DNA from: Haliotis cracherodii
Lineage: Eukaryota
NCBI RefSeq assembly: GCF_022045235.1
Contig: NW_027266266.1
Coordinates: 35,464,001-35,528,000 of the forward strand
Direction of reading: 5' to 3'
DNA: 64,000 bases
A program made the position numbers and the translations under genes. Below are positions 11,849 to 63,186 of this stretch, piece by piece (the first letter of the stretch is position 1; every line of letters begins with the position of its first letter). The notes beneath the pieces were generated by a model. That model saw only the letters and a list, made by a program, of their open reading frames with translations, was not told the DNA's origin and ran no database searches.

Positions 11849-12125
11849 TGTGACCATCCGGGTTTGNNNNNNNNNNNNNNNNNNNNNNNNNNNNNNNNNN
11901 NNNNNNNNNNNNNNNNNNNNNNNNNNNNNNNNNNNNNNNNNNNNNNNNNNNNNNNNNNNNNNNNNNNNNNNNNNNNNNNNNNNNNNNNNNNNNNNNNNNN
12001 NNNNNNNNNNNNNNNNNNNNNNNNNAGAATTGCTTGTCGTAAGAGGTGACTATCGAGGTCGGTGGACTGGTAACCAATATGCGTAGATCGATGTTCATGA
12101 TATCAATCACTGCATGGGTCGTATA
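11848..12125 (+). mobile_element. SINE family 2 fragment spanning the assembly gap
   Basis: tgaccatccgggttt[N]agaattgcttgtcgtaagaggtgacta...gcgtagatcgatgttcatgatatcaatcactg. Confidence 0.6.
11867..12025. other. Assembly gap (159 N)
   Basis: Run of n. Confidence 0.99.
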
Positions 12126-21595: not shown

Positions 21596-21879
21596 AGGGA
21601 GTATAGCCGGTCATTCTGCTTCGACATCCACTTGGGTCACTTAGGTCCTTGTGAACTGTGACTCCTGATACACGTCCCGTATCGACAGTGTCATGTTCCT
21701 TTGCACATAGTTTTAACTTGTTTAACTTGTAGACTACAATTTCTAGTGTTTGAAACTACATCTACCATCTAATGCAACAGTTGCGTCAATGGCGAGACCA
21801 GGGGGCCCCAAACGACCTCGACAAAATCTGGACAGGAAGGATTGCGTGGAGTTGAAGCTCTTTTCTTCCAAAACGTGCT

Positions 21880-32898: not shown

Positions 32899-35800
32899 AT
32901 GATGTTGAGAACAGCAGTGATTTTGTCTTTCGTGGCAGTGACGGGGGCGTTTCTGTACGACTCTAGCGGAGGGTAAGTACATTCGCATACATCTTATTCC
33001 TTATTTCTTGAGAGTGTTCTTTATGATCAGATAGAATATGAATCTAACATAATTGCATCATCATATTTACAAATACACGCATTCTTCCTAATTCTGGTTA
33101 ATTGACTTTTAAATCAAGTGTCTTAGAATAACGGACAAGCTGTTTTTCACTAGGCAGAGCGTAGCTACACAAACACAAGGCAGAGCGTAGCTACACAAAC
33201 ACAAGGCAGAGCGTAGCTACACAAACACTGAGCAGAGTGTAGCTACCCAAACACAAGGCAGAGCGTAGCTACACAAACACAAGGCAGAGCGTAGCTACAC
33301 AAACACAAGGCAGAGCGTAGCTACACAAACACTAGGCAGAGCGTAGCTACACAAACACTAGGCAGAGCGTAGCTACACAAACACAAGGCAAAGCGTAGCG
33401 ACACAAACACTAGGCAGAGCGTAGCGACACAAACACAAGGCAGAGCGTAGTGACACAAACACAAGGCAGAGCGTAGCGACACAAACACTAGGCAGAGCGT
33501 AGCGATACAAACACAAGGCAGAGCGTAGCGACACAAACGCAAGGCAGAGCGTAGCTACCCACACACAAGGCAGAGCGTAGCTACACAAACACAAGGCAGA
33601 GCGTAGCTACCCACACACAAGGCAGAGCGTAGCTACACAAACACTGAGCAGAGCGTAGCTACACAAACACTAAGCAGAGCGTAGCGACACAAACACTAGG
33701 CAGAGCGTAGCTACACAAACACTAGGCAGAGCGTAACTACACAAAGACTAGGCAGAGCGTAGCTACACAAACACTAAGCACAGCGTAGCTACACAAACAC
33801 AAGGCAGAGCGTAGCTACACAAACACTAGGCAGAGCGTAGCGACACAAACACTAGGCAGAGCGTAACTACACAAAGACTAGGCAGAGCGTAGCTACCCAC
33901 ACACAAGGTAGAGCGTAACTACACAAACACTAGGCAGAGCGTAGCTACACAAACACTAGGCAGAGCGTAGCTACACAAACACAAGGAAGAGCGGTGCTAC
34001 ACACACACTAAGCAGAGCGAAGCTACACACACACAAGGCAGAGCGTAGCTACAAAAAACACAAGGCAGAGCGTAGCTACACAAACACAAGACAGAGCGTA
34101 GCTACACAAACACAAGGCAGAGCGTAGCTACACAAACACTAAGCAGAGCGTAGCTACACAAACACTGAGCAGAGCGTAGCTACACAAACACTAGGCAGAG
34201 CGTAGCTACACAAACACAAGGCAGAGCGTAGCTACACAAACACAAGGCAGAGCGAAGCTACACAAACACAAGGCAGAGCGTAGCTACACAAACACAAGGA
34301 AGAGCGGGGCTACACAAACACTAAGCAGAGCGTAGCTACACACACACAAGGCAGAGCGTAGCTACAAAAACACAAGGCAGAGCGTAGCTACACAAACACA
34401 AGACAGAGCGTAGCTACACAAACACAAGGCAGAGCGTAGCTACACAAAGACTAAGCAGAGCGTAGCTACACAAACACAAGGCAGAGCGTAGCTACACAAA
34501 CACTAGGCAGAGCGTAGCTACACAAACACAAGGCAGAGCGTAGCTACACAAACACAAGGCAGAGCGAAGCTACACAAACACAAGGCAGAGCGTAGCTACA
34601 CAAACACTGAGCAGAGCGTAGCTACACAAACACAAGGCAGAGAGTAGCTACACAAACACAAGGTAGAGCGTAGCTACACAAACACAAGGCAGAGCAAGAG
34701 TTCCAGCTTTAGTAACGATAAAGTCTCACAAGGATGTCAGCTGTAGTTAAGATACATTGTCACAAGTCACAAAAGTTCCGGCTTAAGTAATGGTAGCGTC
34801 TCACAGGTGACAAGAGTATCAGATTTAGTAACGATAAAGTCTCACAAGTGACAAGAGTGTCAGCTATAGTAACGATAAAGTAAATATTTCAAAGACTTTT
34901 TTTGTTATGGAGGACATTAATTATAACTGTAATTAGTTAATTCTGTCTTCACACAACCACAAAAACTGAGAAACTTAATCAAAAAGACATAGACACATTT
35001 AATAAAAAATACAAATTCAACTTGAACCCACAGTGGAACTACTTATATTAATATGACCATCACGTGGCTCGACGCACAAACCTGAACGCAGTGGGTTCTC
35101 TCAACATCACAGTACGTGTTTCCTCTCAAGCAATTTTTGAAACATGTTTTAAACATCGGTCGTGATGATAGACATGCACGATCCTTGTGCGGTGGGATCT
35201 GGCGGTACACGGACCATGGGGAAAGGATAGGAAAAATCACTACTCAGCACCATGTGTGTCAAATGTTCGTCTGGCTTTCAGTTTCTGTTGCAACCCACCA
35301 AAGTCATTGGAAGAGAAGATCGATAGAATCCTTGACTTCAACGACAATGATGGCGACGGAATCATGACCCCCCAGGACCTAGACCGTGATCTCATCCTGT
35401 ACGACATCAACGGTAGGCATTCGTAACCAACTCGTGTTATTCCGGGACAAGCCGAATAGCGACTCGTGCCTCTCTCGTGGCCATTAAGCGACTGGGTTCC
35501 GTCCAAGCGTAAAGGGGCATAGCTAAAATTATTGTCAACCCGCTGCTAATGATTCACGTGTATTTACCCCCCCCCCCCCCAATCATATATATATATTCCA
35601 GAAGCTGTTTAAAACACATCGGGACCTACGGCATTTTACAGTATGATTGAACGCATTTAACTGTATCTTAGGGATAATTTTAAATGCAAGACATATGTAA
35701 AATCATAAATTATTTGTACGATGCCATTGCAGGATGAAACATCCAACAAGTTAAAGGCTCGGCATTTATCGTTTACATTCGAAAAAAGGCGATTGACAAG

Positions 35801-40024: not shown

Positions 40025-40760
40025 AGTGTTTGTTTGTTGTTAAACGTCGCACTCTGCCATATTCAAGCTATATAACGGCGGTCTGTAACTAATCGAGTCT
40101 GGACCAGACAATCCAGTGATTGATATAATAAGAATCGATTCACGCAATCAATCAATCAATCAGTTTATTTGGTAATAAGGCCTCAGGCCCACGTACATGT
40201 ATATACAAATTAGTTTCACATCAAGTGCTGCATGAAATAATATTTACAGGTAAGAAGAACGAAGACAGATAGCATTTTTAACATAATTGGCTAAGTTCTC
40301 AAGGCGGTTTACATCAGAAGAGTTTAACATTCTAACCAGTGTGTCTTTACGATTATTAAAAGTAATGAAGTCTAAATATGGGAAATATTTTGAACGAATA
40401 TCTTCATAAATAGGGCAAACAAGAATGAAATGAATTTCATTTTCAACTGCCCTTAACTTGCACAATGGACAAAACCGGAGTGTCTTATCGGTGCCATCCC
40501 TCCTTCCTGTATTATGCATAATTCCCAGTTCTCCAATACGTTAAAGGGTAAGCATACGTCGCTTTTCTTTTGATACTACATTTAATAGATACGGTTCAGG
40601 TGATAATGATGTCTTAAATAATGAATACAGTTCTAATTTCGAGCAATTGTGATACGATGACATGCATCAACCAAGTCATCTAGCCTGACCACCCGATCCC
40701 GTTTGTCGCCTCCATGACAAACACAGTCGCCTCTTACCACAAGCATGGGTTGCTCAATCA
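40025..40760 (-). mobile_element. SINE family 2 split by the LINE insertion
   Basis: The 3' half (40025-40148) and 5' half (40643-40760) join into a contiguous copy that matches the intact 14240-14467 element. Confidence 0.75.
40144..40647 (-). mobile_element. 5'-truncated LINE (3' end of ORF2 plus microsatellite tail) inserted into a SINE
   Basis: Minus-strand peptide RFCPLCKLRAVENEIHFILVCPIYEDIRSKY is the typical C-terminal Cys/His motif of non-LTR ORF2. It is followed by AATAAA and a (TGAT)n tail. GCAAT occurs at both junctions. Confidence 0.8.
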
Positions 40761-41089: not shown

Positions 41090-41820
41090 TTATTTGAGAT
41101 AAATTTGGATCTTGATTCACGGAAAGCTTCTTATTCACATTTAAACAGGAAGTGGAATTCAACGCCTACAGCTGCAGCATACGCAGTTTACGTGTTCTTA
41201 ATTCTCTGTCAATACCAAGCAAACGGCCGCCAACTTCGACAGGTCGATTATGGTTACATGTTTTGTATTTCAGAATAGGATGCTATATGTGTTTAGATAG
41301 GAGAAGAAAGTTTTCAAATGACGTGATATCATTTAATTATTTATAATCTTACCCCTGTGAACTTCTCTCGACGTCTGATCCCCAATCTTCACAGGACATT
41401 TTAGTTTGTTCTATATGGCCAGTTAGCCACTCGCTTTTCCAAGATCACAAGCTAGTTTAAGGAATTTTTAATGAATCTTTTCATTATTTTCACAGTTTCG
41501 TATGCCAGAATTTCACAGCTATATAATAATATTGGCAATATCATAACATCAAAAGCATTGAGGATACAGTCCAAAGGAATATTATAATTTCTACATTTTT
41601 TGAGAAGACAGATCATGGCTAAAGACGCACTCTCTGATAAACATTTTATTGTTGACTTGAAACTTATGTTTCTAATGAATATAACACCGTACGTATAATT
41701 GTCTACAGTATCAATTTCCGTATTCTCCAAATAAAAAGATAACATACTGTTTTTCGACGTCCCGCTTCGAAATGTTTTTTTTCCAGGTTTACGTCTAATT
41801 GCCAAGTGAACACACAACGC
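41090..41820 (-). mobile_element. Degenerate LINE ORF2 fragment (region C-terminal to the RT domain)
   Basis: Peptide FYLENTEIDTVDNYTYGVIF...AFDVMILPILLYSCEILAY matches the 'IEIVxxYxYLG...PILLYGCEIW' pattern of non-LTR retrotransposons. Boundaries are approximate. Confidence 0.7.
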
Positions 41821-42039
41821 CCTTTAGAAAGTAATCAAAATTAACAAATGTTATATTTGGAATAATACTTTCTGAGTAAAGTACATATTCTCGTACTTTT
41901 TTGTCTGGAGACCCGTCCGGGATTCGAGGCACCTAATATTGCCAAATATTGCAACAACTTTTAAAAGAATCTAATGTATTCTGGAGTTCAGGGATCAGTT
42001 GCAGAATCAGCAAAGAGGAGAGTGTCCGACCGCCCCACC

Positions 42040-42160
42040 GTGTTTATAGTGCCAGCCCACTGAGATACCGCAGTTTGAAATGAATACCCCACTCAGACAC
42101 AGTATACTGACTCCGAGCCGAGCCGACCTGAGCCAGGCAGGGTAACAACAAGTACGTTCT
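42040..42160 (-). mobile_element. SINE family 1 core fragment
   Basis: ccccactcagacacagtatactgactccgagccga...ccaggcagggtaacaacaagtac. Confidence 0.7.
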
Positions 42161-42347
42161 CTTATCGTCTGTTGATATGGCGAGGTAAAGAGAATACTCA
42201 AATTGAAAGAAATTTAGACTCTGTCTGTTTGTATGCCCTTATTGGCTGCAATACACTTTGCCTACAGTACTATCAAAACAACTTCAGGTTTCAGTGATTA
42301 TGGCTGCCACGTCTTCATCACTACACAAGGATACATAGCCCACATTC

Positions 42348-42585
42348 CATGACCATCCGGGGTAGAACAGGCCTTCAGCAACCCATGCTTGCCGTAAATG
42401 GCGACTCTAATTGTCGTAAGAGGCGACAGACGGGATCGGGTGGTTGGGTGGTCATCGTATCCCATTTACGTAGATCGATGCTCATGATATCAGTGACTAG
42501 ATTGTCTGGTCGAGACTCGATTATTTACATACTGCAGCCATGTAGCTGGAATAATGCGGCTTTAAACAGACAAACAAACAAACAC
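42348..42585 (+). mobile_element. SINE family 2
   Basis: tgaccatccggggtagaacaggccttcagcaacccatgcttg...gtcgtaagaggcgac...gcggctttaaacagacaaacaaac. Confidence 0.75.
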
Positions 42586-42671
42586 AATTTATACCCGTGC
42601 TCATTTAATGCTCACAAATACCATGCAGGGTGCTGCAACAGCATATTACACGTGCACCATCTCGTGGGGAG

Positions 42672-42956
42672 ACCGCCTCCGTGGTCTGGTGGTAGAGCGC
42701 CCGCCCGGAGAGCGGAAGGTCGGGAGTTCTATCTCCGGCCGCGTCATACCAAAAGACATTACAAGATGGTACTTGTTGTTACCCAGTCTAGCGCTCGGCA
42801 CTAAGGGGCTATATCAAGTACTGGTCGGCTCGGAGTCAGTATACTGTGTCTGAGAAGGGTATTCATGTTAAACTGCGGCATGGTATCACACTGAGTTAGT
42901 ACTATAAATCGGCATCAGCCCGGACTAGTACAAGCAGCCACACACACACACACACA

Positions 42957-42996
<40 letters not shown>
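42672..42996 (+). mobile_element. tRNA-derived SINE, family 1, ending in an expanded (CA)n
   Basis: Head ccgcctccgtggtctggtggtagagcg, conserved core, and (CA)n at 42939-42996. Confidence 0.8.
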
Positions 42997-42997
<1 letters not shown>

Positions 42998-43175
42998 TGC
43001 AGGTTCAATTCACGTGATGGAATTTCTTTGTTGATAAATATTGATTTTTTAACCAGTCAAAAATCAACATAAGATGCGAATCAATTGATATTGTTGATAA
43101 GTAAAACCTCTAACCTCAAATTACTTTAAGGAAAAACCTCCCTATGAATATTCAACTTTCAACTTGATTGTGTAA

Positions 43176-43550
43176 CCGCCTTCGTGAGAGCGGAAGGTCA
43201 GGGGTTCAATTCCCGGCCGCGTCATACCAAAACACGTTCTTGTCTTGACGTAGCTTGTTGTTACCCTGCCTGGTGCTCGGCATTAAGGGAATAACACAAG
43301 GACTGGTCGGCTCGGCATTAAGGGAATAACACAAGGACTGGTCGGCTCGGAGTCAGTATACTGTGTCTGAGTGGGGTATTCATGTTGAACTGCGGCATAG
43401 TATCTCACTGGATAGCACTATACAATCGTTCATTAGTCCGGACTAGTACAAGCAACCCTACACACACACACGCGTGCATGCACGTCACTATTTTAGTGTT
43501 AATAATCTTGGGCGCGACGTTAAACCCCATTTCATCTGATCACCTGATCA
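43176..43550 (+). mobile_element. tRNA-derived SINE, family 1, with an internal ~35-bp tandem duplication
   Basis: B box ggttcaattcc, ctcggcattaagggaataacacaaggactggtcgg present twice, and tail gcgcgacgttaaaccccatttca. Confidence 0.8.
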
Positions 43551-43718
43551 CATTGATTGAGTGCAAGTTCATGGTTTAAAAGAGGAGAGATTTTAGATCT
43601 CAAAACCCCTTCGGTTTATCTGCTAAATAAAACATATACAACATTGAGATTCGTAGTTTCTTTGATTTATTCAAAACACACAGACAAACAGGCTCATGAT
43701 GGAGTGGAGAACCCAGCG

Positions 43719-45205
43719 CTATCCAGCCTGCAAAGAGAAGCACATCACCATATAGTTCCCTGAATAGATCAAGATGATTAAACAATTGGCAATTTGCGTA
43801 ATGAGTTATTTCAAGCCAACTCAAAAGAAACATTAGGGTTTCTAGATATTGAAAAGAGTGTGTTAAATGACTTTTGAAAAAAGTGCAGGTTACTGCGTTG
43901 CAATACCACCGTGAACAATATATCAGTTATGTCTGGGGGAGTCAAACGGAGTACTCACTGGCTTTACCAGTTGGTGGAAACCCGCGAGCACGGGCATGGT
44001 GTTTACAAACCATAGATAACAATCCGAGTTAATTTGGGATATTGACCAACATTGGAAAGGCACGCGACTCTGACACATCTACAGTACGGCGATTTGAACG
44101 TGTGTGGATTACATTCAAAAGGGTGTGTAGTAAATTATTGACGACATACCAGGACAGTCAAACAGAAGTTCCTTAGCCAGTTGTCTACGCCGATTCCGCC
44201 GATGAGGAGCATACAGAAGGGATTCAGTTCCGCTCCTTCAGTACCAGTTACTCCCGTCTCGCCTGTACTGCCGATCACGGTATTAGAGACCCCTTGTGGG
44301 CCAGTGAAACCTGCAACTCCGGTACCCCCATTATCCCCAACAGCGCCAGTATCCCCCATGTTTCCGATATCACCATTACCTCCAATAATACCTCTATTCC
44401 CAACACCACCCGTGACCCCCGGGGCTCCATTGCCTCCACCCATGCCCGTGGATCCAGTGTCTCCAGTGTCTCCAGTGTATCCGGTGTATCCGGTGTAGCC
44501 TTGTACCCCTGTTGTCCCGGTGTCTCCAGTATTGCCTGTGGAGCCAGTAATACCAGTACTTCCAGTGTTTCCAGTATAGCCTGTAAAGCCATCCTTGCCC
44601 TGTACCCCCATAATCCCCATTGTTCCTTTCTGGCCCATCGCGCCAGTATCGCCAGTGTCACCGATGTTTCCCGTATATCCTGTGTATCCCGTATAGCCGG
44701 TGCCGCCCGTGTAACCAATCATTCCGACAGGGCCCTGTGATCCAGTGTTCCCCTGTGGTCCAGTATCTCCTGATACCCCTCCGGTACCCTCAACTCCTCT
44801 AGGTCCTGAAATGCCTTGTGTGCCTGTCGACCCTTGTGGACCCGTTGACCCTGTAAACCCAGTGTAGCCCTTGGGCCCTTGTGCACCTGTTGGGCCCATG
44901 TCCCCCGTCGGACCGGTCACCCCCTGCGTTCCTGTAATGCCCTTAACGCCAATGGTGCCGGTTGCTCCTCTAGGTCCTGTTGGACCTGTCCGACCAGTAG
45001 GACCTGCCAAACGAAACACAAATTTCACAAATAATCACACACTGCAAAAAAATACAAACAGTGGACGCACACACTAAAATAAAGATACGTATAGTAAGTG
45101 AATTGATGGAAAATACAATCGTTAAGTAAAATGACAAGAAATACCTTTCGAGTGACCAGCGGCCAGTGCAAGTACAGTGAGGAGAACGATGCTGCTTGTC
45201 CACAT
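43719..45205 (-). CDS. Secreted short-chain collagen-like protein, Gly-X-Thr-rich (307 aa); exons 45205-45145, 45003-44150, 43727-43719
   Basis: Exon 1 encodes the signal peptide [20 protein letters not shown] and ends in a phase-1 GT donor. The acceptor tgtgtttcgtttggcag precedes 80 uninterrupted GXY triplets, NTVI, 5 more triplets and [27 protein letters not shown] donor CTG|GTATGT at 44150/44149 joins the acceptor cttctctttgcag, giving ...AG*. AATAAA lies about 50 nt downstream (43671-43666). If the last intron is not spliced, the ORF ends at 44135 (...VLVCRQ*). Gly codons are mixed, so this is not a DNA tandem repeat. Confidence 0.88.
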
Positions 45206-45235
45206 GTCTGAATGCCTAAGAGCCCGATCTGGGTA

Positions 45236-45272
45236 CTGTTCTGAACAAAGCCAAATCACCACCCATATATAC
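45236..45272 (-). promoter_or_regulatory. Candidate TATA box and initiator of the collagen-like gene
   Basis: Minus-strand TATATAT at 45271-45265, with an Inr-like TTCAGA about 25-30 nt downstream and about 35 nt before the ATG at 45205. Confidence 0.5.
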
Positions 45273-46153
45273 GATATGAGGTGTCCAATTTTATCAGGTA
45301 TTGTCAGTTAAGTGATAACATCTGTGCATGTGACATCGTTCCTCCGCCTTCTTCTACAACAGCTGTTACAGCTTCTCGGGGACAGGCAGTGGTCTGAGAT
45401 CTGCCAGCTGACCAACATCAAACAAACATAATAAAACAAACGATGTTTGGACACCAGTAACACATACAGAATTAACAAATAGCGCAGTACATTCCAAAAC
45501 ATTCAATCTCGTTCCCAGTAATCCAATTCAAGAAAACACAATCCATATTCAGAAACATTCCGCGAAGGGAAAGCATAGACATTTTGGAATCAGAAGTCAG
45601 TTGTCTGATCAAAAGTTGAAATGATATTCCAATTAATGTTTTTTTCCAAACATTTTCTTCTAGTTACTTGCAGAGGTGTATTCAAAATAATTTTCGCTTC
45701 TCAACTGCTAGATTATTGGTTACATCCCTCACTTTTTATCGGGAAAAGTAAAGGTGATTCCTCCCATGGCTACACATTGTAAAGACGCTTCGTGGAGTTA
45801 ACCACAAAGGCGTAGATGGTATGCTTCTAAATGCACTCAACAGTATAAACATTATTATAGCTAAAAAGGATAGAATTATCATTAAACCACCCGCACGTTA
45901 TCAGAAATGAGCGCGCCGCTGTAACTTGATAATTCCCTCATAGTGCTTGCATATAAGCCTGTTGTTAGGTGACTGTGATAGGGGTAGAGAAAGTGACGTC
46001 ACGTTTTATAGTGACGTCATCTGTTTTTTTCTGTGACGTTTCCATATTTGTAAACGTGGGTCAGTGACATTCATGTTGATTGCAGTAAATGTTTCAAAAC
46101 CGACAGTGTTGTTTCTTTTTATTTGATAACAAATTCCATCCATTTTAGCTATA

Positions 46154-46294
46154 ATAACGGTCACGCTATTTTTCAGGGCATTATCATTTGCAGAAGCCCT
46201 CGGTCTTTTCAACTGCCCTCCTTCGTCGGGCAGTTAATGGAAAACCTCGAGCTTCTGCAAATGATAATGCCCTGAAAAATAGCGTTACCCTTAT
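46154..46294. repeat. ~140-bp hairpin / inverted repeat
   Basis: Perfect 35-bp arms at 46163-46197 and 46251-46285, plus an inner stem aactgccc/gggcagtt. Confidence 0.9.
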
Positions 46295-47034
46295 AATAAT
46301 TATCAATGACAAACAATATATTTTGCCCACGTTGCTGACAACCTTCCACATATGTGTGTACTTGCTATTCCAAATACAGTGACATAGTGTTAATCCTGAC
46401 GGCATCGTTCCATGTGCAATTAGAATTTTCTGATTAAAACATAATTACAGTGATCAATGACCAGTGCATGTAATTAACTGGTATCGGCAGTGACCGCCCG
46501 GATAGTGGCGCCTCCCTGTTATAACGGGGTCCGGACTAGTGAGGTTGCATTGTACCAGTTGTGTAGGTTTTTCAATACCGGGTTTGCTGCAACAGGGGAG
46601 TGCAAACGGTTATTTTCTTAAATACTATAGTATAGACACGTGAGTGGCTTTAAGCAGTCAGTCAGATTTGCTGCCCTGGCTGTGTATGAGTGAGTGACTA
46701 TGGATATCGTGTTACTTATATTACGGCTTGTCCTCTAAATCACGAGAAAGGTCCAGTTTAAAAGTAGACGTAGACGTAGTCGTATATCACACTGCTAAAA
46801 TAAACACGATGAAGTTCAAACATGAGTTCAAACAAACATGAGTTCAAAACGGAGGCGAATTTGGGACTCTAACAAAAGACCCTGGAGCTTGTTGGCAAAA
46901 TAAGGTGGAGAGACAAGAACTTCATTAAAGTTGTTCGTCGGAATAGATGCATTTCCATTTTCAGAATGTGTAAAGATTAAGGGATGATTTTGTGACAGGT
47001 CATGCATGATCCTATAGGGCTACTTTAGCTACTC

Positions 47035-48369: not shown

Positions 48370-51300
48370 GCACACGGAGAAACAGACATTGGATACACAG
48401 AGACACTGATACACGGAGAAACAGACATTGACCACACAGAGACACTGACACACGGAGAAACAGGCATTGACCACACAGAGACACTGACACACGGAGAAAC
48501 AGGCATTGACCACACAGAGACACTGACACACGGAGAAACAGGCATTGACCACACAGAGACACTGACACACGGAGAAACAGGCATTGACCACACAGAGACA
48601 CTGACACACGGAGAAACAGGCATTGACCACACAGAGACACTGACACACGGGGAAACAGGCATTGACCACACAGAGACACTGACACACGGAGAAACAGATA
48701 TTGAATACACAGAGACACTGACACACGGAGAAACAGACATTGACCACACAGAGACACTGACACACCGAGAAACAGACATTGGATACACAGAGACACTGAC
48801 ACACGGAGAAACAGACATTGGATACAATGAGACACTGACACACCGAGAAACAGACATTGAATACACAGAGACACTGACACACGGAGAAACAGACATTGGA
48901 TACACAGAGACTCTGACACACGGGGAAACAGATATTGGATACACAAAGACGCTGAGACACGGAGAAACAGACATTGACCACACAGAGACACTGACACACG
49001 GAGAAACAGGCATTGACCACACAGAGACACTGACACACGGAGAAACAGGCATTGACCACACAGAGACACTGACACACGGAGAAACGGGCATTGACCACAC
49101 AGAGACACTGACACACGGAGAAACAGACATTGGATACACAGAGACACTGACACACCGAGAGACAGACATTGAATACAGTGAGACACTGACACACGGAGAA
49201 ACAGATATTGAATACACAGAGACACTGACACACGGAGAAACAGATATTGAATACACAGAAACACTGACACAAGGAGAAACAGACATTGGATACACAGAGA
49301 CTCTGACACACGGAGAAACAGATATTGAATACACAGAGACACTGACACACGGAGAAACAGATATTGAATACACAGAGACACTGACACACGGAGAAACAGA
49401 CATTGGATACAGTGAGACACTGACACACGGAGAAACAGATATTGAATACACAGAGACACTGACACACGGAGAAAGAGATATTGAATACACAGAGACACTG
49501 ACACACGGAGAAACAGATATTGAATACACAGAGACACTGAGACACGGAGAAACAGATATTGAATACACAGAGACACTGACACACGGAGAAACAGACATTG
49601 GATACACAGAGACACTGAGACACGGAGAAACAGATATTGGATACAGTGAGACATTGACACACGGAGAAACAGACATTGGATACAGTGAGACACTGACACA
49701 CGGAGAAACAGATATTGAATACACAGAGACACTGACACACGGAGAAACAGATATTGGATACAGTGAGACACTGACACACCGAGAGACAGATATTGGATAC
49801 AGTGAGACACTGGCACACAGAGAGACAGACATTGGATACACAGAGACACTGACATACGGAGAAACAGACATTGGATACACAGAGACACTGACACACGGAG
49901 AAACAGGCATTGAATACACAGAGACATTGACACACGGAGAAACAGACATTTGATACACAGAGACACTGACACACGGAGAAACAGACATTGGATACAGTGA
50001 GACACTGACACACGGAGATACAGACATTGACCACACAGAGACACTGACACACGGAGAAACAGGCATTGACCACACAGAGACACTAACACACGGAGAAACA
50101 GGCATTGACCACACAGAGACACTGACACACCGAGAAACAGACATTGGATTCACAGAGACACTGACACACAGAGAGACAGATATTGAATACAGTGAGACAC
50201 TGACACACGGAGAAACAGATATTGAATACACAGAGACACTGACACACGGAGAAACAGGCATTGAATACACAGAGACACTGACACACGGAGAAACAGATAT
50301 TGGATACACAGAGACACTGACACACGGAGAAACAGATATTGAATACACAGAGACACTGACACACGGAGAAACAGATATTGAATACACAGAGACACTGACA
50401 CACGGAGAAACAGATATTGAATACACAGAGACACTGACACACGGAGAAACAGATATTGAATACACAGAGACACTGACACACGGAGAAACAGACATTGGAT
50501 ACAGTGAGACACTGACACACGGAGAAACAGATATTGAATACACAGAGACACTGACACACGGAGAAACAGATATTGAATACACAGAGACACTGACACACGG
50601 AGAAACAGATATTGAATACACAGAGACACTTACACACGGAGAAACAGATATTGAATACACAGAGACACTGACACACGGAGAAACAGACATTAGATACACA
50701 GAGACACTGAGACACGGAGAAACAGATATTGAATACACAGAGACACTGACACACGGAGAAACAGATATTGAATACACAGAGACACTGACACACGGAGAAA
50801 CAGATATTGGATACACAGAGACACTTACACACGGAGAAACAGATATTGAATACACAGAGACACTGACACACGGAGAAACAGACATTGGATACAGTAAGAC
50901 ACTGACACACGGAGAAACAGATATTGAATACACAGAGACACTGACACACGGAGAAACAGATATTGAATACACAGAGACACTGACACACGGAGAAAGAGAT
51001 ATTGAATACACAGAGACACTGACACACGGAGAAACAGGCATTGAATACACAGAGACATTGACACACGGAGAAACAGACATTTGATACACAGAGACACTGA
51101 AACACGGAGAAACAGACATTGGATACAGTGAGACACTGACACACGGAGATACAGACATTGACCACACAGAGACACTGACACACGGAGAAACACGCATTGA
51201 CCACACAGAGACACTGACACACGGAGAAACAGGCATTGACCACACAGAGACACTGACACACGGAGAAACAGACATTGGACTCACAGAGACACTGACACAC

Positions 51301-54300
51301 AGAGAGACAGATATTGAATACAGTGAGACACTGACACACGGAGAAACAGATATTGAATACACAGAGACACTGACACACGGAGAAACAGATATTGAATACA
51401 CAGAGACACTGACACACGGAGAAACAGATATTGGATACACAGAGACACTGACACACGGAGAAACAGATATTGAATACACAGAGACACTGACACACGGAGA
51501 AACAGATATTGAATACACAGAGACACTGAGACACGGAGAAACAGATATTGAATACACAGAGACACTGACACACGGAGAAACAGATATTGAATACACAGAG
51601 ACACTGACACACGGAGAAACAGATATTGGATACACAGAGACACTGACACACGGAGAAACAGATATTGAATACAGTGAGACACTGACACACGGAGAAACAG
51701 ACATTGGATACAGTGAGACACTGACACACGGAGAAACAGATATTGAATACACAGAGACACTGACACACGGAGAAAGAGATATTGAATACACAGAGACACT
51801 GACACACGGAGAAACAGATATTGAATACACAGAGACACTGACACACGGAGAAACAGATATTGAATACACAGAGACACTGACACACGGAGAAACAGACATT
51901 AGATACACAGAGACACTGAGACACGGAGAAACAGATATTGAATACACAGAGACACTGACACACGGAGAAACAGACATTGGATACAGTGAGACACTGACAC
52001 ACGGAGAAACAGATATTGAATACACAGAGACACTGACACACGGAGAAACAGATATTGAATACACAGAAACACTGACACAAGGAGAAACAGACATTGGATA
52101 CACAGAGACTCTGACACACGGAGAAACAGATATTGAATACACAGAGACACTGACACACGGAGAAACAGATATTGAATACACAGAGACACTGACACACGGA
52201 GAAACAGACATTGGATACACAGAGACACTGACACACGGAGAAACAGATATTGAATACACAGAGACACTGACACACGGAGAAAGAGATATTGAATACACAG
52301 AGACACTGACACACGGAGAAACAGATATTGAATACACAGAGACACTGACACACGGAGAAACAGATATTGAATACACAGAGACACTGACACACGGAGAAAC
52401 AGACATTGGATACACAGAGACACTGAGACACGGAGAAACAGATATTGGATACAGTGAGACATTGACACACGGAGAAACAGACATTGGATACAGTGAGACA
52501 CTGACACACGGAGAAACAGATATTGAATACACAGAGACACTGACACACGGAGAAACAGATATTGGATACAGTGAGACACTGACACACCGAGAGACAGATA
52601 TTGGATACAGTGAGACACTGGCACACAGAGAGACAGACATTGGATACACAGAGACACTGACATACGGAGAAACAGACATTGGATACACAGAGACACTGAC
52701 ACACGGAGAAACAGGCATTGAATACACAGAGACATTGACACACGGAGAAACAGACATTTGATACACAGAGACACTGACACACGGAGAAACAGACATTGGA
52801 TTCAGTGAGACACTGACACACGGAGATACAGACATTGACCACACAGAGACACTGACATACGGAGAAACAGGCATTGACCACACAGAGACACTAACACACG
52901 GAGAAACAGGCATTGACCACACAGAGACACTGACACACCGAGAAACAGACATTGGATTCACAGAGACACTGACACACAGAGAGACAGATATTGAATACAG
53001 TGAGACACTGACACACGGAGAAACAGATATTGAATACACAGAGACACTGACACACGGAGAAACAGGCATTGGATACACAGAGACACTGACACACGGAGAA
53101 ACAGATATTGGATACACAGAGACACTGACACACGGAGAAACAGATATTGAATACACAGAGACACTGACACACGGAGAAACAGATATTGAATACACAGAGA
53201 CACTGACACACGGAGAAACAGATATTGAATACACAGAGACACTGAGACACGGAGAAACAGATATTGAATACACAGAGACACTGAGACACGGAGAAACAGA
53301 TATTGAATACACAGAGACACTGACACACGGAGAAACAGATATTGGATACACAGAGACACTGACACACGGAGAAACAGATATTGAATACACAGAGACACTG
53401 ACACACGGAGAAACAGACATTGGATACAGTGAGACACTGACACACGGAGAAACAGATATTGAATACACAGAGACATTGACACACGGAGAAAGAGATATTG
53501 AATACACAGAGACACTGACACACGGAGAAACAGATATTGAATACACAGAGACACTGACACACGGAGAAACAGATATTGAATACACAGAGACACTGACACA
53601 CGGAGAAACAGACATTAGATACACAGAGACACTGAGACACGGAGAAACAGATATTGAATACACAGAGACACTGACACACGGAGAAACAGACATTGGATAC
53701 AGTGAGACACTGACACACGGAGAAACAGATATTGAATACACAGAGACACTGACACACGGAGAAACAGATATTGAATACACAGAGACACTGACACACGGAG
53801 AAACAGATATTGAATACACAGAGACACTGACACACGGAGAAACAGATATTGAATACACAGAGACACTGACATACGGAGAAACAGACATTAGATACACAGA
53901 GACACTGAGACACGGAGAAACAGATATTGAATACACAGAGACACTGAGACACGGAGAAACAGATATTGAATACACAGAGACACTGACACACGGAGAAACA
54001 GATATTGAATACACAGAGACACTGACACACAGAGAAACAGATATTGAATACACAGAGACACTGACACACGGAGAAACAGATATTGAATACACAGAGACAC
54101 TGAGACACGGAGAAACAGATATTGAATACACAGAGACACTGACACACGGAGAAACAGATATTGAATACACAGAGACACTGACACACGGAGAAACAGACAT
54201 TGGATACACAGAGACACTGAGACACGGAGAAACAGATATTGAATACACAGAGACACTGACACACGGAGAAACAGACATTGGATACAGTGAGACACTGACA

Positions 54301-57300
54301 CACGCAGAAACAGATATTGAATACACAGAGACACTGACAAACGGAGAAACAGATATTGAATACACAGAGACACTGACACACGGAGAAACAGACATTGGAT
54401 ACAGTGAGACACTGAGACACGGAGAAACAGATATTAAATAAAAAAGAGACACTGACACACGGAGAAACAGATATTGAATACACAGAGACACTGACACACG
54501 GAGAAACAGATATTGAATACACAGAGACACTGACACACGGAGAAACAGATATTGAATACACAGAGACACTGACACACGGAGAAATAGATATTGAATACAC
54601 AGAGACACTGACACACGGAGAAACAGACATTGGATACAGTGAGACACTGAGACACGGAGAAACAGATATTGAATACACAGAGACACTGACACACGGAGAA
54701 ACAGACACTGGATACAGTGAGACACTGACACACGGAGAAACAGATATTGAATACACAGAGACACTGAGACACGGAGAAACAGATATTGAATACACAGAGA
54801 CACTGACACACGGAGAAACAGACATTGGATACACAGAGACACTGAGACACGGAGAAACAGATATTGAATACACAGAGACACTGACACACGGAGAAACAGA
54901 CATTGGATACAGTGAGACACTGACACACGGAGAAACAGATATTGAATACACAGAGACACTGAGACACGGAGAAACAGATATTGAATACACAGAGACACTG
55001 ACACACGGAGAAACAGACATTGGATACAGTGAGACACTGAGACACGGAGAAACAGATATTGGATACACAGAGACACTGACACACTGAGAAACAGACATTG
55101 GATACAGTGAGACACTGACACACGTAGAAACAGATATTGAATACACAGAGACACTGACACACGGAGAAACAGATATTGAATACACAGAGACACGGACACA
55201 CGGAGAAACAGACATTGGATACACAGAGACACTGAGACACGGAGAAACAGATATTGAATACACAGAGACACTGACACACGGAGAAACAGACATTGGATAC
55301 AATGAGACACTGACACACGGAGAAACAGATATTGAATACACAGAGACACTGACACACGGAGAAACAGATATTGAATACACAGAGACACTGACACACGGAG
55401 AAACAGACATTGAATACAGTGAGACACTGACACACGGAGAAACAGATATTGGATACACAGAGACACTGAGACACGGAGAAACAGAAATTGGATACAGTGA
55501 GACACTGACACACGGAGAAACAGATATTGAATACACAGAGACACTGACACACGGAGAAACAGATATTGAATACACAGAGACACTGACACACGGAGAAACA
55601 GATATTGAATACACAGAGACAATGACACACGGAGAAACAGACATTAGATACACAGAGACACTGAGACACGGAGAAACAGATATTGAATACACAGAGACAC
55701 TGACACACGGAGAAACAGATATTGAATACACAGAGACACTGACACACGGAGAAACAGATATTGGATACACAGAGACACTTACACACGGAGAAAAAGATAT
55801 TGAATACAGAGAGACACTGACACACGGAGAAACAGACATTGGATACAGTAAGACACTGACATACGGAGAAACAGATATTGAATACACAGAGACACTGACA
55901 CACGGAGAAACAGATATTGAATACACAGAGACACTGACACACGGAGAAACAGATATTGAATACACAGAGACACTGACACACGGAGAAACAGGCATTGAAT
56001 ACACAGAGACACTGACACACGGAGAAACAGACATTTGATACACAGAGACACTGACACACGGAGAAACAGACATTGGATACAGTGAGACACTGACACACGG
56101 AGATACAGACATTGACCACACAGAGACACTCACACACGGAGAAACACGCATTGACCACACAGAGACACTGACACACGGAGAAACAGGCATTGACCACACA
56201 GAGACACTGACACACGGAGAAACAGACATTGGATTCACAGAGACACTGACACACAGAGAGACAGATATTGAATACACAGAGACACTGACACACGGAGAAA
56301 CAGATATTGAATACACAGAGACACTGACACACGGAGAAACAGATATTGAATACACAGAGACACTGACACACGGAGAAACAGATATTGGATACACAGAGAC
56401 ACTGACACACGGAGAAACAGATATTGAATACACAGAGACACTGACACACGGAGAAACAGATATTGAATACACAGAGACACTGAGACACGGAGAAACAGAT
56501 ATTGAATACACAGAGACACTGACACACGGAGAAACAGATATTGAATACACAGAGACACTGACACACGGAGAAACAGATATTGGATACACAGAGACACTGA
56601 CACACGGAGAAACAGATATTGAATACACAGAGACACTGACACACGGAGAAACAGACATTGGATACAGTGAGACACTGACACACGGAGAAACAGATATTGA
56701 ATACACAGAGACACTGACACACGGAGAAACAGATATTGAATACACAGAGACACTGACACACGGAGAAACAGATATTGAATACACAGAGACACTGACACAC
56801 GGAGAAACAGATATTGAATACACAGAGACACTGACACACGGAGAAACAGACATTGGATACACAGAGACACTGAGACACGGAGAAACAGATATTGAATACA
56901 CAGAGACACTGACACACGGAGAAACAGACATTGGATACAGTGAGACACTGACACACCGAGAAACAGATATTGAATACACAGAGACACTGAGACACGGAGA
57001 AACAGATATTGAATACACAGAGACACTGACACACGGAGAAACAGATATTGAATACACAGAGACACTGACACACGGAGAAACAGATATTGAATACACAGAG
57101 ACACTGACACACAGAGAAACAGACATTAGATACACAGAGACACTGAGACACGGAGAAACAGATATTGAATACACAGAGACACTGACACACGGAGAAACAG
57201 ATATTGAATACACAGAGACACTGACACACGGAGAAACAGATATTGGATACACAGAGACACTGACACACGGAGAAACAGATATTGAATACACAGAGACACT

Positions 57301-58660
57301 GACACACGGAGAAACAGATATTGAATACACAGAGACACTGACACACGGAGAAACAGATATTCAATACACAGAGACACTGACACACGGAGAAATAGATATT
57401 GAATACACAGAGACACTGACACACGGAGAAACAGACATTGGATACACAGAGACACTGAGACACGGAGAAACAGATATTGAATACACAGAGAAACAGACAC
57501 ACGGAGAAACAGACACTGGATACAGTGAGACACTGACACACGCAGAAACAGATATTGAATACACAGAGACACTGAGACACGGAGAAACAGATATTGAATA
57601 CACAGAGACACTGACACACGGAGAAACAGACATTGGATACACAGAGACACTGAGACACGGAGAAACAGATATTGAATACACAGAGACACTGACACACGGA
57701 GAAACAGACATTGGATACAGTGAGACACTGACACACGGAGAAACAGATATTGAATACACAGAGACACTGAGACACGGAGAAACAGATATTGAATACACAG
57801 AGACACTGACACACGGAGAAACAGACATTGGATACAGTGAGACACTGAGACACGGAGAAACAGATATTGGATACACAGAGACACTGACACACGGAGAAAC
57901 AGACATTGGATACACAGAGACACTGACACACGGAGAAACAGACATTGGAGACACAGAGACACTGACACACGGAGAAACAGATATTGAATACACAGAGACA
58001 CTGACACACCAAGAAACAGACATTGGATACACAGAGACTCTGACACACGGAGAAACAGACATTTGATACAGTGAGACACTGAGACACGGAGAAACAGACA
58101 TTGAATACACAGAGACACTGACACACCGAGAGACAGATATTGGATACACAGAGACACTGACACACGGAGAAACAGACATTGGATACACATAGAAACTGAC
58201 ACACGGAGAAACAGATATTGGATACAGTGAGACACTGACACACGGAGAAACAGGCATTGACCACACAGAGACACTGACACACGGAGAAACAGACATTGGA
58301 GACACAGAGACACTGACACACGGAGAAACAGATATTGAATACACAGAGACACTGACACACCAAGAAACAGACATTGGATACACAGAGACTCTGACACACG
58401 GAGAAACAGACATTTGATACAGTGAGACACTGAGACACGGAGAAACAGACATTGAATACACAGAGACGCTGACACACCGAGAGACAGATATTGGATACAC
58501 AGAGACACTGACACACGGAGAAACAGACATTGGATACACATAGAAACTGACACACGGAGAAACAGATATTGGATACAGTGAGACACTGACACACGGAGAA
58601 ACAGGCATTGACTACACAGAAACACTGACACACGGAGAAACAGACATTGAATACACAGAG
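48370..58660. repeat. 39-bp satellite (gacacacggagaaacagatattgaatacacagagacact)n, ~264 copies, with higher-order structure
   Basis: Direct periodicity over 10.3 kb; variant blocks recur 2808 bp apart. Confidence 0.97.
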
Positions 58661-61600: not shown

Positions 61601-63186
61601 GGACAGAGGGGACAGTCTGTTAGAGGGGACAGAGGGGACGGTCTGTGAGAGGAGACAGAGGGGATGGTTTGTTAGAGGGGACAGAGGGGATGGTCTGTTA
61701 GAGGGGACAGAGGGGATGGTCTGTGAAAGGGGACAGAGGGGATGGACTGTTAGAGGAGACAGAGGGGATGGTCTGTTAGAGGGGACAGAGGGGATGGTCT
61801 GTGAAAGGGGACAGAGGGGACGGTCTGTTAGATGGGGCAGAGGGGATGGTCTGTGAAAGGGGACAGAGGGGACGGTCTGTTAGATGGGACAGAGGGGACG
61901 GTCTGTTAGAGGGGACAGAGGGGACGGTCTGTTAGAGGGGCAGTCTGTTAGATGGGACAGAGGGGACGGTCTGTTAGAGGGGACAGTCTGTTAGAGGGGA
62001 CAGTCTGTTAGATGGAACAGAGGGGACGGTCTGTTAGAGGGGACGGTCTGTTAGAGGGAACAGTCTGTTAGATGGGACAGAGGGGACGGTCTGTTAGAGA
62101 GGACAGAGGGGATGGTCTGTTGGAGGGGACATAGGGGACGGTCTGTTAGAGGGGACAGAGGGGACGGTCTGTCAAAGGGGACAGAGGGGACGGACTGTTA
62201 GAGGAGACAGAGGGGATGGTCTGTTAGAGGGGACAGAGGGGATGGTCTGTGAAAGGGGACAGAGGGGACGGTCTGTTAGATGGGACAGAGGGGATGGTCT
62301 GTGAAAGGGGACAGAGGGGACGGTCTGTTAGATGGGACAGAGGGGACGGTCTGTTAGAGGGGACAGAGGGGACGGTCTGTTAGAGGGGACAGTCTGTTAG
62401 ATGGGACAGAGGGGACGGTCTGTTAGAGGGGACAGTCTGTTAGAGGGGACAGTCTGTTAGATGGGACAGAGGGGACGGTCTGTTAGAGGGGACGGTCTGT
62501 TAGAGGGGATGGTCTGTTAGATGGGACAGAGGGGACGGTCTGTTAGAGAGGACAGAGGGGATGGTCTGTTGGAGGGGACATAGGGGACGGTCTGTTAGAG
62601 GGGACAGAGGGGACGGTCTGTCAAAGGGGAGAGAGGGGACGGTCTGTTAGGTGGGGCAGAGGGGACGGTCTGTTGGCGGGGACGGTCTGTTAAAGGGGAC
62701 AGAGGGGGTGGTTTGTTAGAGGGGACGGTCTGTTAGAGGGGACAGAGGGGATGGTCTGTTAGAGGGGACAGAGGGGATGGTTTCTTAGAGGGAACAGAGG
62801 GGACAGTCTGTTAGAGGGGACAGAGGTGACGGTATGTTAGAGGGCACAGAGGGGACCGACTGTTAGAGGGGACAGAGGGGACGGTCTGTTAGAGGGGACA
62901 GAGGGATGGTCTGTTGAGGGGGACAGAGGGGACGGACTGTTAGAGGGGACAGAGGTGACGGTCTGTTAGAGGGGACAGAGGGGATGGTCTGTTGAAGGGT
63001 ACAGAGGGGACGGTCCGTTAGAGGGGACGATCTGTTAATGGGGACAGAGGGGATGGTCTGTTAAAGGGGACAGTCTGTTAGAGGGGACAGAGGGGACGGT
63101 CTGTTAGAGGGGACGGTCTGTTAAAGGGGAGAGAGGGGATGGTCTGTTAGAGGGGACAGAGGGGATGGTCCGTTAGAGGGGACAGT
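58661..63186. repeat. 17-bp satellite (tagagaggacagtYtgt)n grading into a G-rich 26-bp variant (agaggggacagaggggacggtctgtt) from ~60800
   Basis: Direct periodicity; abuts the 39-bp satellite with no spacer. Confidence 0.97.

Follow-up and report, generated by a model that had tools for sequence, protein, structure and literature searches.

A transcribed abalone gene for a collagen-like chain with threonine in place of proline at the Y position

Structure and transcription of the gene

The window analysed here is a stretch of 64,000 nucleotides from the genome of the abalone Haliotis cracherodii (contig NW_027266266.1, positions 35,464,001 to 35,528,000), and across all six of its reading frames there is just one run of at least six Gly-X-Y triplets. 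This run lies on the minus strand, in a gene of two or three exons whose features, together with two paralogues, are collected in Table 1. From its sequence, the gene is predicted to encode an acidic product of about 27 kDa, in which a signal peptide precedes 85 Gly-X-Y triplets and a tail of 28-30 residues closes the chain.

Table 1 Features of the collagen-like gene (window positions) and its two paralogues (positions on C3).
Feature	Position	Strand	Description and basis
TATA-like element TATATAT	45265..45271	-	60-66 nt 5' of the ATG; read from sequence
Exon 1, coding part	45145..45205	-	20 residues + 1 nt (phase 1); putative signal peptide
Intron 1	45004..45144	-	141 nt, GT..AG
Collagen-like domain, 80 unbroken Gly-X-Y triplets	44285..45003	-	Translation; Pfam PF01391
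Four-residue break NTVI, then 5 Gly-X-Y triplets	44228..44284	-	Translation
Non-collagenous tail, 26 residues; end of exon 2 if intron 2 is spliced	44150..44227	-	Translation
Facultative intron 2	43728..44149	-	422 nt, GTATGT...CAG
Exon 3 (three-exon model)	43650..43727	-	A-G + stop 43721-43719, then 3' UTR; sequence and X2 depth
Paralogue 1	C3:35529026-35529886	+	Triplet counts in text
Paralogue 2	C3:35540183-35541175	-	Triplet run + two-Cys tail

Read by eye, exon 1 encodes a putative signal peptide, in which an 11-residue hydrophobic core stands between M-W-T-S-S and G-H-S-K; upstream, the 5' UTR reaches about 45230 or beyond. Intron 1 splits the first Gly codon of the collagen-like domain. 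The exon-2 reading frame, translated from 45004..44138 on the minus strand (289 residues), served as the query in all protein searches, with exon 1 judged by reading only; in this query the first Gly codon takes in the final base of the intron, and exon 1 ends in an identical letter. The translation contains three Cys, all within its last 26 residues, and the 26-residue tail has Cys at residues 264 and 281. If intron 2 is retained, four further codons lead to a stop at 44137-44135 and a tail of 30 residues; if it is spliced, the 26 residues are followed by A-G, giving a tail of 28. The 3' UTR carries an AATAAA at 43671-43666, and the 3' end is placed only approximately, near 43650.

Evidence for splicing came from contigs of four data sets (X1, X2, X9 and X10). 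In X1 and X2, one contig each contains a joint from 45001 to 45143 that skips exactly 141 nt and has the ends CT..AC on the plus strand (cut +2), at depths of 522.7 and 102.4, respectively. The depth of this joint is 0 in the DNA-like sets X9 and X10, where contigs read through intron 1, and the upstream intergenic bins (45322-45774) are covered in X9 and X10 and have a depth of 0 in X1 and X2. X1 and X2, whose labels give RNA only as a guess, were taken as RNA because they contain the spliced joint and do not cover the intergenic bins. The gene is therefore actively transcribed, and its first intron is spliced. The X2 contig extends 88 letters past the joint at 45143, to about 45230, which fits a start of transcription some 25-30 nt downstream of the TATATAT element. 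The original prediction, for which a lack of transcripts or junction reads would have been damaging, had described a resident, spliced eukaryotic gene of a probable mollusc as opposed to bacterial contamination; the skipping of intron 1 in X1 and X2 and its retention in X9 and X10 bear this out, and the host is indeed a mollusc, an abalone whose HSP70 is 98% identical to those of H. cracherodii and H. fulgens.

The second intron proposed at the same time gains indirect support from X2 but is retained in X1. In X2, contig 18 (depth 102.4) stops at 44149, contig 17 (depth 12.5) covers 43705-44178, which corresponds to intron 2 plus overlaps of about 30 nt, and the depth at 43661 is 75.1. The X1 contig runs from 45001 to 43854 without a break, intron 2 included, and no intron-2 joint was present among the joints listed. 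An additional C-terminal domain in downstream exons was considered and rejected: the transcript contigs, which end at 43854 (X1) and 43705 (X2), contain no further coding exon, and the depths fit a short last exon.

Composition of the collagen-like domain

Pfam assigns the domain to the collagen family (PF01391; 115.2 bits, E 1.1e-33, with a gathering threshold of 27.2 bits), which makes the product collagen-like. Gly occupies the first position in every one of triplets 1-80. Within this run the Y position is held by Thr 40 times, followed by Gln (9), Ile (5), Met (5) and a single Pro (in the triplet GAP), and the X position most often by Pro (11), Asp (10), Val (9) and Tyr (9). Over all 85 triplets, Thr is found at Y in 43 and Pro in one, GPP is absent, and Tyr or Phe stands at X in 12, for example in runs of GYT. 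This recount agrees exactly with the one on which the original prediction was built. The run is also diverse at the DNA level, with 45 distinct triplets among the 80, Gly codons spread over GGA (27), GGC (24), GGT (18) and GGG (18), and Thr encoded by all four of its codons. Tandem Repeats Finder (TRF) detected no tandem repeat within the gene at a score of at least 100, and only five micro-arrays of 23-50 nt each at a score of at least 30. Taken together, the TRF results, the 45 different triplets and the mixed codon use rule out an artefact of satellite DNA.

Since only one Y-position Pro is present, hydroxyproline at Y is ruled out as the stabiliser of a helix, as had been argued, and the Y-position counts agree with the Riftia type of collagen in which Thr prevails over hydroxyproline. 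The further description of the helix as independent of prolyl hydroxylase was too strong, because the 11 Pro at X remain modifiable; in annelid cuticle collagen 4-hydroxyproline occurs at X. With Pro making up just 13 of the 289 residues and only 23 charged residues at X and Y, the very low imino-acid content and low charge lead us to expect that an unmodified helix would be weak.

Paralogues and sequence variation

Two paralogues on C3 (Table 1) form a cluster of less than 32 kb with the gene. They carry 85 and 88 triplets, with Thr at Y in 43 and 34, and match PF01391 with 126.5 and 118 bits, so that triplet lengths across the cluster are 85-88. Within the trio, Y is Thr in 114 of 241 triplets and Pro in 8 of 241, whereas 26 other diverse collagen runs of the same genome have Thr at Y in 19 of 519 triplets (3.7%) and Pro in 158 of 519 (30%). 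The composition of the trio is thus a strong outlier among the collagen exons of its own genome. A multi-exon collagen locus on C1 is intermediate, with Thr at 29% and Pro at 14% of Y positions.

Each paralogue tail contains two Cys, 16-17 residues apart. Beyond these two Cys the tails of the three genes could not be aligned, and a search of the abalone genome with each tail returned only that tail itself, save for one chance-level row (E 7.9); a shared trimerisation domain is for these reasons a conjecture. Comparison of the DNA of the three genes and their flanks gave only repeat matches of 41-63 nt and a common microsatellite, so that, with no flank homology, the duplication is not datable from the flanks. 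A script search for the signal exons of the two paralogues yielded no convincing candidate. The open frame of one paralogue (L020) has its own ATG and a hydrophobic start, which suggests that intron 1 may be absent there.

We then compared the gene between data sets. The contigs are about 95% (X1) and 90% (X2) identical to the window, and four independent data sets, with identities of 90-97%, all preserve the frame; among the indels listed for X1 and X2, those in the coding region amount to two paired -1/+1 events, 2-5 nt apart. The tail and 3' processing differ between data sets. Over codons 113-289, a comparison of the window with X1 revealed no non-synonymous change at Gly codons (84 sites) and three synonymous ones, against 23 non-synonymous changes in 197.5 sites at X and Y codons (Fisher p = 0.00024). 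For the same codons dN is 0.075 and dS 0.037, so that the dN/dS ratio comes to 2.0 for all of them and to 3.7 for X and Y codons, values which draw on 40 of 188 differences (for X1 on 37 of 54, all at or below 44668) and take codons 113-289 as fully covered, on the inference that the differences are listed by position. Many of the changes affect two or three adjacent bases of a single codon, a pattern suggestive of conversion between repeat units. Given the partial set of differences and these multi-base codon changes, we do not claim proven positive selection. The Gly scaffold is nevertheless frozen, while the X/Y surface changes fast between abalone alleles or species.

This pattern bears on two alternatives to a collagen helix. 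According to the first, there is no triple helix, and the product is a disordered, mucin-like or adhesive secreted protein rich in Gly, Thr and Tyr, in which O-glycosylated Thr or modified Tyr is functional, as in mussel foot proteins, and the Gly period is a by-product of 9-bp repeat growth. The low Pro content and low charge would suit such a protein, as would the short 9- and 18-bp tandem remnants in the gene and the richness of this genome in minisatellites of 9/18-bp period with GXY frames (19 of 24 other inspected places); passages in PMC4275877 likewise describe a mussel foot protein with O-glycosylated Thr and refer to mussel glue as having "some features of collagen". However, the 80 triplets are unbroken despite their diversity, and fast change at X and Y without a single Gly replacement suggests selection for Gly at every third residue, for which a disordered protein has no need. 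The same helix length has, in addition, been kept by three old paralogues that share hardly any similarity at the DNA level. On balance we regard a disordered protein as unlikely.

According to the second, the locus is a young, weakly constrained or decaying open reading frame derived from repeats, transcribed but without protein function. The very fast amino-acid change, the variation of the tail and 3' processing, and the fact that protein searches did not demonstrate a homologue outside the genus would all be expected of such a frame. Set against this are the intact frame in all four data sets, the strict conservation of Gly, the high depth of the X1 contig with its exact removal of intron 1, and the three diverged paralogues, all of them open frames of equal helix length, which together make this explanation improbable.

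Relatives and a proposed model

A search with the whole exon-2 product gave 4469 matches at E <= 0.001 among 8000 scored candidates. The best 120 of these 4469, with E values as low as 1.4e-50 and identities of 32-67%, are all collagen-like proteins of metagenomic, bacterial or phage type, and none bears an animal name. Six matches were inspected, and each carries other N- or C-terminal domains unrelated to the abalone protein; we take the whole-protein matches to reflect composition and not homology. NCBIfam models of bacterial collagen-like adhesins also match, over the repeats only, at E 1e-29 to 1e-44, with scores far under their cut-offs (Lcl 142 against 500 bits, Scl1 123 against 325, Scl2 103 against 400). 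For the tail, a word search of the protein library with residues 241-289 produced one candidate and no scored match, phmmer found nothing at E <= 0.001 for the 49-residue C-terminus among 1.84 billion representatives, and there were no matches in PDB sequences or Pfam. Since the protein itself is absent from the matches, the libraries may lack abalone gene models for this locus, and the empty tail searches are weak evidence for absence from other molluscs. Collagen (PF01391) was the only family found by Pfam in the exon-2 product; neither there nor in the 49-residue C-terminus was there a fibrillar C-propeptide, a C1q domain or a coiled-coil neck with a lectin domain.

These matches raise the possibility that a collagen-like gene was acquired from a bacterium, phage or giant virus and gained its introns and signal exon later, the more so as, according to passages of PMC11923368, Thr triplets are in excess in bacteria, archaea and viruses but show no such enrichment in the collagen-like proteins of eukaryotes. 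Yet the similarity is confined to low-complexity repeat, the terminal domains of the inspected matches are lacking in the abalone protein, and its tail is without relatives in protein libraries or PDB sequences. The gene also has two spliceosomal introns, the second facultative, belongs to a cluster of three genes and recurs in several abalone data sets, and the intermediate composition of the C1 locus points to an endogenous route to Thr-rich helices. Horizontal transfer is therefore the least probable of the explanations considered, and we think it very unlikely.

BclA, the collagen-like tail-fibre proteins of phages and the Scl/Lcl adhesins resemble the abalone protein in triplet composition and in their short helices, but have globular N- or C-terminal domains or cell-wall anchors, of which it has neither. 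For instance, the BclA C-terminal domain (PF18573) is present in two of the matches (P0041 and P0106) and was not found by Pfam in the abalone exon-2 product. The abalone gene further differs in its introns, putative eukaryotic signal exon and animal paralogues, and in NCBIfam scores under the cut-offs.

Among animal proteins, one close parallel is with annelid cuticle collagen, a very long chain of the worm cuticle; Mann and colleagues reportedly identified glycosylated Thr as the stabiliser of that of Riftia pachyptila in 1996. As described in parts of PMC11923368 and PMC11766948, this too is an animal collagen in which Thr, and not 4-hydroxyproline, dominates at Y. The abalone chain, by comparison, has only 85 triplets, a gastropod host, a gene of two or three exons and a Cys-containing tail of 28-30 residues. 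Nematode cuticle collagens are secreted proteins of about 300 residues with few-exon genes, a Cys-flanked helix, Tyr cross-links and large lineage-specific families, and are alike in being small and secreted, with few exons, Cys beside the helix and a lineage-specific family; their helix, however, is interrupted and Pro-rich and is accompanied by a conserved N-terminal cuticle-collagen domain, whereas the abalone helix is Thr-rich and unbroken for 80 triplets, PF01391 is the only domain in the exon-2 product, and exon 1 codes for 20 residues. Cnidarian minicollagens, in which Cys-containing ends cross-link the trimers, share a short secreted helix and a Cys-containing end, but number about 12-16 triplets, with poly-Pro stretches, and carry a six-Cys domain at each end; the abalone chain has 85 triplets and no Pro run, and its two to three Cys are confined to the C-terminus.

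No report of a mollusc G-X-Thr collagen was found in the literature outside subscription journals, although this protein could be among those tabulated in the supplements of abalone shell proteomes (PMC6003135, PMC2989941). Neither the tail searches nor the literature led to a described family for the protein; identity with a characterised family would have counted against the original prediction. Its proposal of a possible undescribed structural protein class, of the periostracum, shell, mucus, egg coat or radula, is overstated: the protein is a compositionally unusual collagen-like variant belonging to a small family restricted to its lineage, and no described counterpart was found.

We propose, with a probability of roughly 55%, that this gene encodes a secreted Thr-rich collagen-like chain which forms a trimeric rod stabilised by glycosylated Thr. 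Three chains would associate via their C-terminal tails, where the two Cys per tail may form interchain disulfides, and would zip into a collagen triple helix of about 70 nm (85 x 3 x 0.286 nm, the last figure being the rise per residue of collagen). On the analogy of BclA and of the cuticle collagen of Riftia, the Thr residues at Y are probably O-glycosylated in the secretory pathway and would then supply the stability. Passages in PMC11923368 state that without galactosylation of its Thr Ac-(Gly-Pro-Thr)10 remains a random coil and that Thr residues of BclA are glycosylated, and parts of PMC11766948 link the stability of Riftia cuticle collagen to glycosylated Thr. Tyr or Phe at X could give oxidative cross-links, and the rod may have an extracellular structural or coat role.

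A bolder form of this model, which we hold to be rather doubtful, would have the trio as hydroxyproline-independent collagens born within the abalone lineage from 9-bp units, in convergence on the bacterial and viral G-X-Thr solution. The three chains (85, 85 and 88 triplets) would possibly form a heterotrimer, again a rod stabilised by glycosylated Thr, and diversifying selection at X and Y, likened to that on abalone gamete-recognition proteins, would suggest a recognition or coat molecule over a plain scaffold.

If the helix forms and needs modified Thr, abalones would be a second animal lineage, after the annelids with their cuticle collagen, to have replaced hydroxyproline by Thr, and, to our knowledge, the first molluscs to have done so. 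This would be a clear instance of animal collagen-like proteins converging with bacterial or viral ones, and recombinant collagen materials free of hydroxyproline would gain a natural template from an animal. At about 27 kDa, and with its whole helix in one exon, the chain is small enough for expression and study, and its combination of frozen Gly with fast-changing X and Y offers a convenient system in which to ask what, besides stability, selects the surfaces of collagens.

Transcription and splicing of a threonine-rich collagen gene

The exon-2 product of the gene comprises 80 Gly-X-Y triplets without a break, a four-residue interruption and five further triplets. Within the 80-triplet run, the Y position is occupied by Thr 40 times and by Pro once, while the X position holds Pro (11), Asp (10), Val (9) and Tyr (9). 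Overall, 43 of the 85 triplets carry Thr at Y, and GPP does not occur. A recount on the translation reproduced all the figures that the original prediction had given for the gene and its triplets. The product matches the Pfam collagen repeat (E 1.1e-33), and no other run of at least six GXY triplets lies within the window. A DNA satellite was rejected as the source of the repeat: TRF reports just five micro-arrays of 23-50 nt inside the gene, and the use of 45 different triplets and of all Gly and Thr codons also contradicts such a reading. Exon 1 encodes a putative signal peptide (M-W-T-S-S before and G-H-S-K after a hydrophobic core of 11 residues), and the tail of exon 2 starts L-N-P-F-C, with Cys at residues 264, 281 and 287.

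Features of the gene and of related loci (bare coordinates are window positions; C1 and C3 are contigs of the same genome)
Feature	Position	Strand	Description
Exon 1, coding part	ATG 45205, end 45145 before GTATTT	minus	20 codons + 1 base
Intron 1	between 45145 and 45003	minus	141 nt; pyrimidine-rich stretch and CAG at 3' end
Exon 2	start 45003; TAA 44137-44135	minus	phase 1; frame open for 289 codons
Intron 2 (original prediction)	CTG/GTATGT 44150/44149 to CAG/GCT 43728/43727	minus	facultative
PolyA signal AATAAA	43671-43666	minus	
Paralogue	C3:35529026-35529886	plus	1 kb past window end; 85 triplets, Y=Thr 43, Y=Pro 2
Paralogue	C3:35540183-35541175	minus	88 triplets, Y=Thr 34, Y=Pro 6
Collagen locus	C1, 71.83-71.85 Mb		multi-exon; intermediate composition

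Contigs of four sequencing runs (X1, X2, X9 and X10) were compared with the window over 42000-46500. In X1 and X2, one contig each passes directly from 45001 to 45143, leaving out exactly 141 nt whose ends read CT..AC on the plus strand and hence GT..AG on the gene strand (joint depth 522.7 in X1 and 102.4 in X2). This joint is absent from X9 and X10, whose contigs cross the intron unbroken (e.g. X10, 43575-45878); the upstream bins at 45322-45774 are evenly covered in X9 and X10 and have depth 0 in X1 and X2. On this pattern X1 and X2 are taken to be RNA, for which the automated label is a guess, and X9 and X10 to be DNA; intron 1 and transcription of the gene are established.

The second intron of the original prediction fared less uniformly. 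Its removal would give a protein ending L-T-V-L-A-G-stop (43721-43719) with a tail of 28 residues. In X1, a single contig of depth 522.7 is continuous between 45001 and 43854; this run therefore retains the intron, and the protein ends four codons beyond the 44150/44149 boundary. In X2, however, the contig of depth 102.4 ends at 44149, and a second contig of depth 12.5 (43705-44178) spans the putative intron plus an overlap of ~30 nt on each side, as expected for a branch in a 31-mer graph. Depth in X2 is 75.1 at 43661, and the bin mean over 43661-43811 (41.7) agrees with a contig of depth ~75 ending near 43729. Although no intron-2 joint appears among the joints listed, with 765 more lying outside the list, this pattern is as a mostly spliced transcript would leave it, and lends indirect support to splicing. 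The two forms of the protein differ just in the last 2-4 residues.

Relative to the window, the contig of X1 shows 54 differences over 1148 nt (~95% identity) and that of X2 shows 82 over 853 nt (~90%); the X10 contig is ~97.5% identical, with 24 gap positions. No run contained half of the searched words, and the runs derive from individuals or species other than that of the window. Among the differences listed, indels in the coding region are confined to X2, where two -1/+1 pairs occur with 2-5 nt between their members, so the frame is kept.

Host genome and surrounding repeats

The original proposal of a probable mollusc as host was borne out by the genome's HSP70. One intronless gene identifies an abalone, sharing 98% identity with the HSP70 proteins of Haliotis cracherodii and H. 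fulgens, against 93-94% for H. rubra, H. asinina and H. diversicolor and no more than 81% for other molluscs among the matches listed. A tandem cluster at G000:C11:4198039-4225863 holds at least five intronless HSP70 genes and a further copy that contains an internal TGA.

Large arrays of minisatellites with a unit length of 11-57 bp (968-2778, 4193-7436, 9342-10051, 14712-16250, 18951-21607, 22244-23968, 33148-34695, 48371-58660 and 58665-63185) together occupy ~40-45% of the window and account for its strong GC and AT skews and very long spurious ORFs; the biggest has ~264 copies of a 39-bp unit (10.3 kb, 92% matches). The gene is flanked by repeats at 42300-43560 and 45775-46378 whose contig depths, from thousands up to millions in each of the four runs, mark them as high-copy elements. 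By eye, minus-strand ORFs at 40244-40519 and 41452-41817 resemble C-terminal parts of a retroelement protein. A run of 159 N lies at 11867-12025.

Constraint on the helix and relatives in the same genome

Substitutions between the window and X1 were scored among the differences listed (37 of X1's 54) from position 44668 downwards, where the list, apparently cut by position, seems complete for X1. Across these codons (113-289), dN is 0.075 and dS 0.037. Codons for the periodic Gly show three synonymous and no non-synonymous changes, and X/Y codons two and 23, respectively (dN 0.127, dS 0.034); in the 3' UTR, 4 of 281 positions are different (Fisher p = 0.00024 for Gly against X/Y non-synonymous changes; p = 2e-6 for the latter against the UTR). 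Thus, Gly at each third residue is protected, while the remaining helix surface changes faster than the neutral proxies. Many changes alter 2-3 neighbouring bases of a single codon and may stem from conversion between repeat units, so positive selection is suggested and no more.

A six-frame search of the genome with the exon-2 product gave at least 162 matches, and 135 of 3196 candidates were scored. Among 24 places inspected besides the gene itself, 19 were minisatellites reading GXY by chance of frame, two had no run of at least ten triplets, and three were genuine, diverse collagen-like frames. Of these, two are neighbours of the window gene; each paralogue has a short tail containing a pair of Cys spaced 16-17 residues apart, and 0-7 codons past the tail a GT resembles a donor site. 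The proteins of this trio are ~50% identical while DNA similarity is almost nil, so the duplications are old; helix length has been maintained despite this. Pooled over four runs, the trio has Thr at Y in 114 of 241 triplets (47%) and Pro in 8 (3%), compared with 95 (29%) and 46 (14%) of 327 in nine runs of the C1 locus, the third genuine place, and 19 (3.7%) and 158 (30%) of 519 in the genome's 26 other diverse collagen runs. The trio is extreme among this genome's collagens.

Several further features were observed at these places. The C1 locus (G000:C1:71833001-71846340; L015, L037, L048), a candidate endogenous origin for Thr-rich helices, has one exon with 153 triplets and, by eye, an EGF-like Cys pattern in an ORF just downstream. 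An 18-bp-period array (G000:C12:58322001-58332000; L014, L059), with the frame GYTGHT... inside a 1919-aa stop-free frame, is 50-60% identical to the window gene over ~95 residues, and may represent either a simple minisatellite or a giant gene of G-X-Thr repeats. The read-through of paralogue L020 (3183-3320) and the window gene's tail (44138-44233) contain M-L-L-x-x-G-I-G-V and N-W-x-x-R-N-F in swapped order, a resemblance that may be accidental or may date from an ancient rearrangement or duplication of the tail. Ordinary Pro-rich collagen exons occur in opposite orientation on G000:C54:105172-111608 (L030/L033/L046) and G000:C67:27453801-27460237 (L031/L032/L047), with C54 probably carrying an unplaced second copy, or a haplotig, of the C67 locus.

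Relatives elsewhere and a proposed working of the protein

Protein searches used exon 2 alone as the query, with the exons unjoined. The 120 matches listed are all bacterial, phage or metagenomic collagen-like proteins, and the six examined have unrelated terminal domains; NCBIfam adhesin models match the repeats far under their cut-offs. For the C-terminal 49 residues, neither a word search nor an exhaustive phmmer run over 1.84 billion representatives found a relative, and PDB sequences and Pfam gave none. Because the protein itself is also absent from the matches listed, the libraries may be without abalone models of the locus. Literature searches found no mollusc G-X-Thr collagen; supplementary tables of abalone shell proteomes, outside those searches, might list the protein. 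Its architecture sets it apart from fibrillar collagens (no C-propeptide), C1q-type proteins (no C1q domain), minicollagens (without their Cys domains) and nematode collagens (without their N-domain).

The gene is of secretory type, given its putative signal peptide, is spliced and well expressed, and encodes a chain of 27 kDa with Gly periodicity under selection; the chain is acidic, the exon-2 product having a pI of 4.4. Three such chains would pair via their Cys tails and fold into a ~70-nm rod, and the GYT runs (9 triplets) suggest Tyr-based cross-linking. With one X-Pro-Gly site in all, Y-position Hyp cannot stabilise the helix, and 13 Pro in total together with 23 charged X/Y residues imply that a bare helix should be weak. 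Hydroxylation of X-position Pro occurs in annelid cuticle collagen, and by analogy the 11 Pro at X could be candidate hydroxylation sites. According to PMC11923368, (Gly-Pro-Thr)10 folds only with galactosylated Thr residues, and triplets with Thr are characteristic of collagen-like proteins from bacteria, archaea and viruses, not of eukaryotic ones; PMC11766948 refers to Thr glycosylation in the cuticle collagen of Riftia. On these grounds, O-glycosylated Thr would be the most economical stabiliser of the helix. By this analogy, the abalone protein would work like the Thr-type collagens, Riftia cuticle collagen and BclA, yet it belongs to neither, and is without the BclA-C domain.
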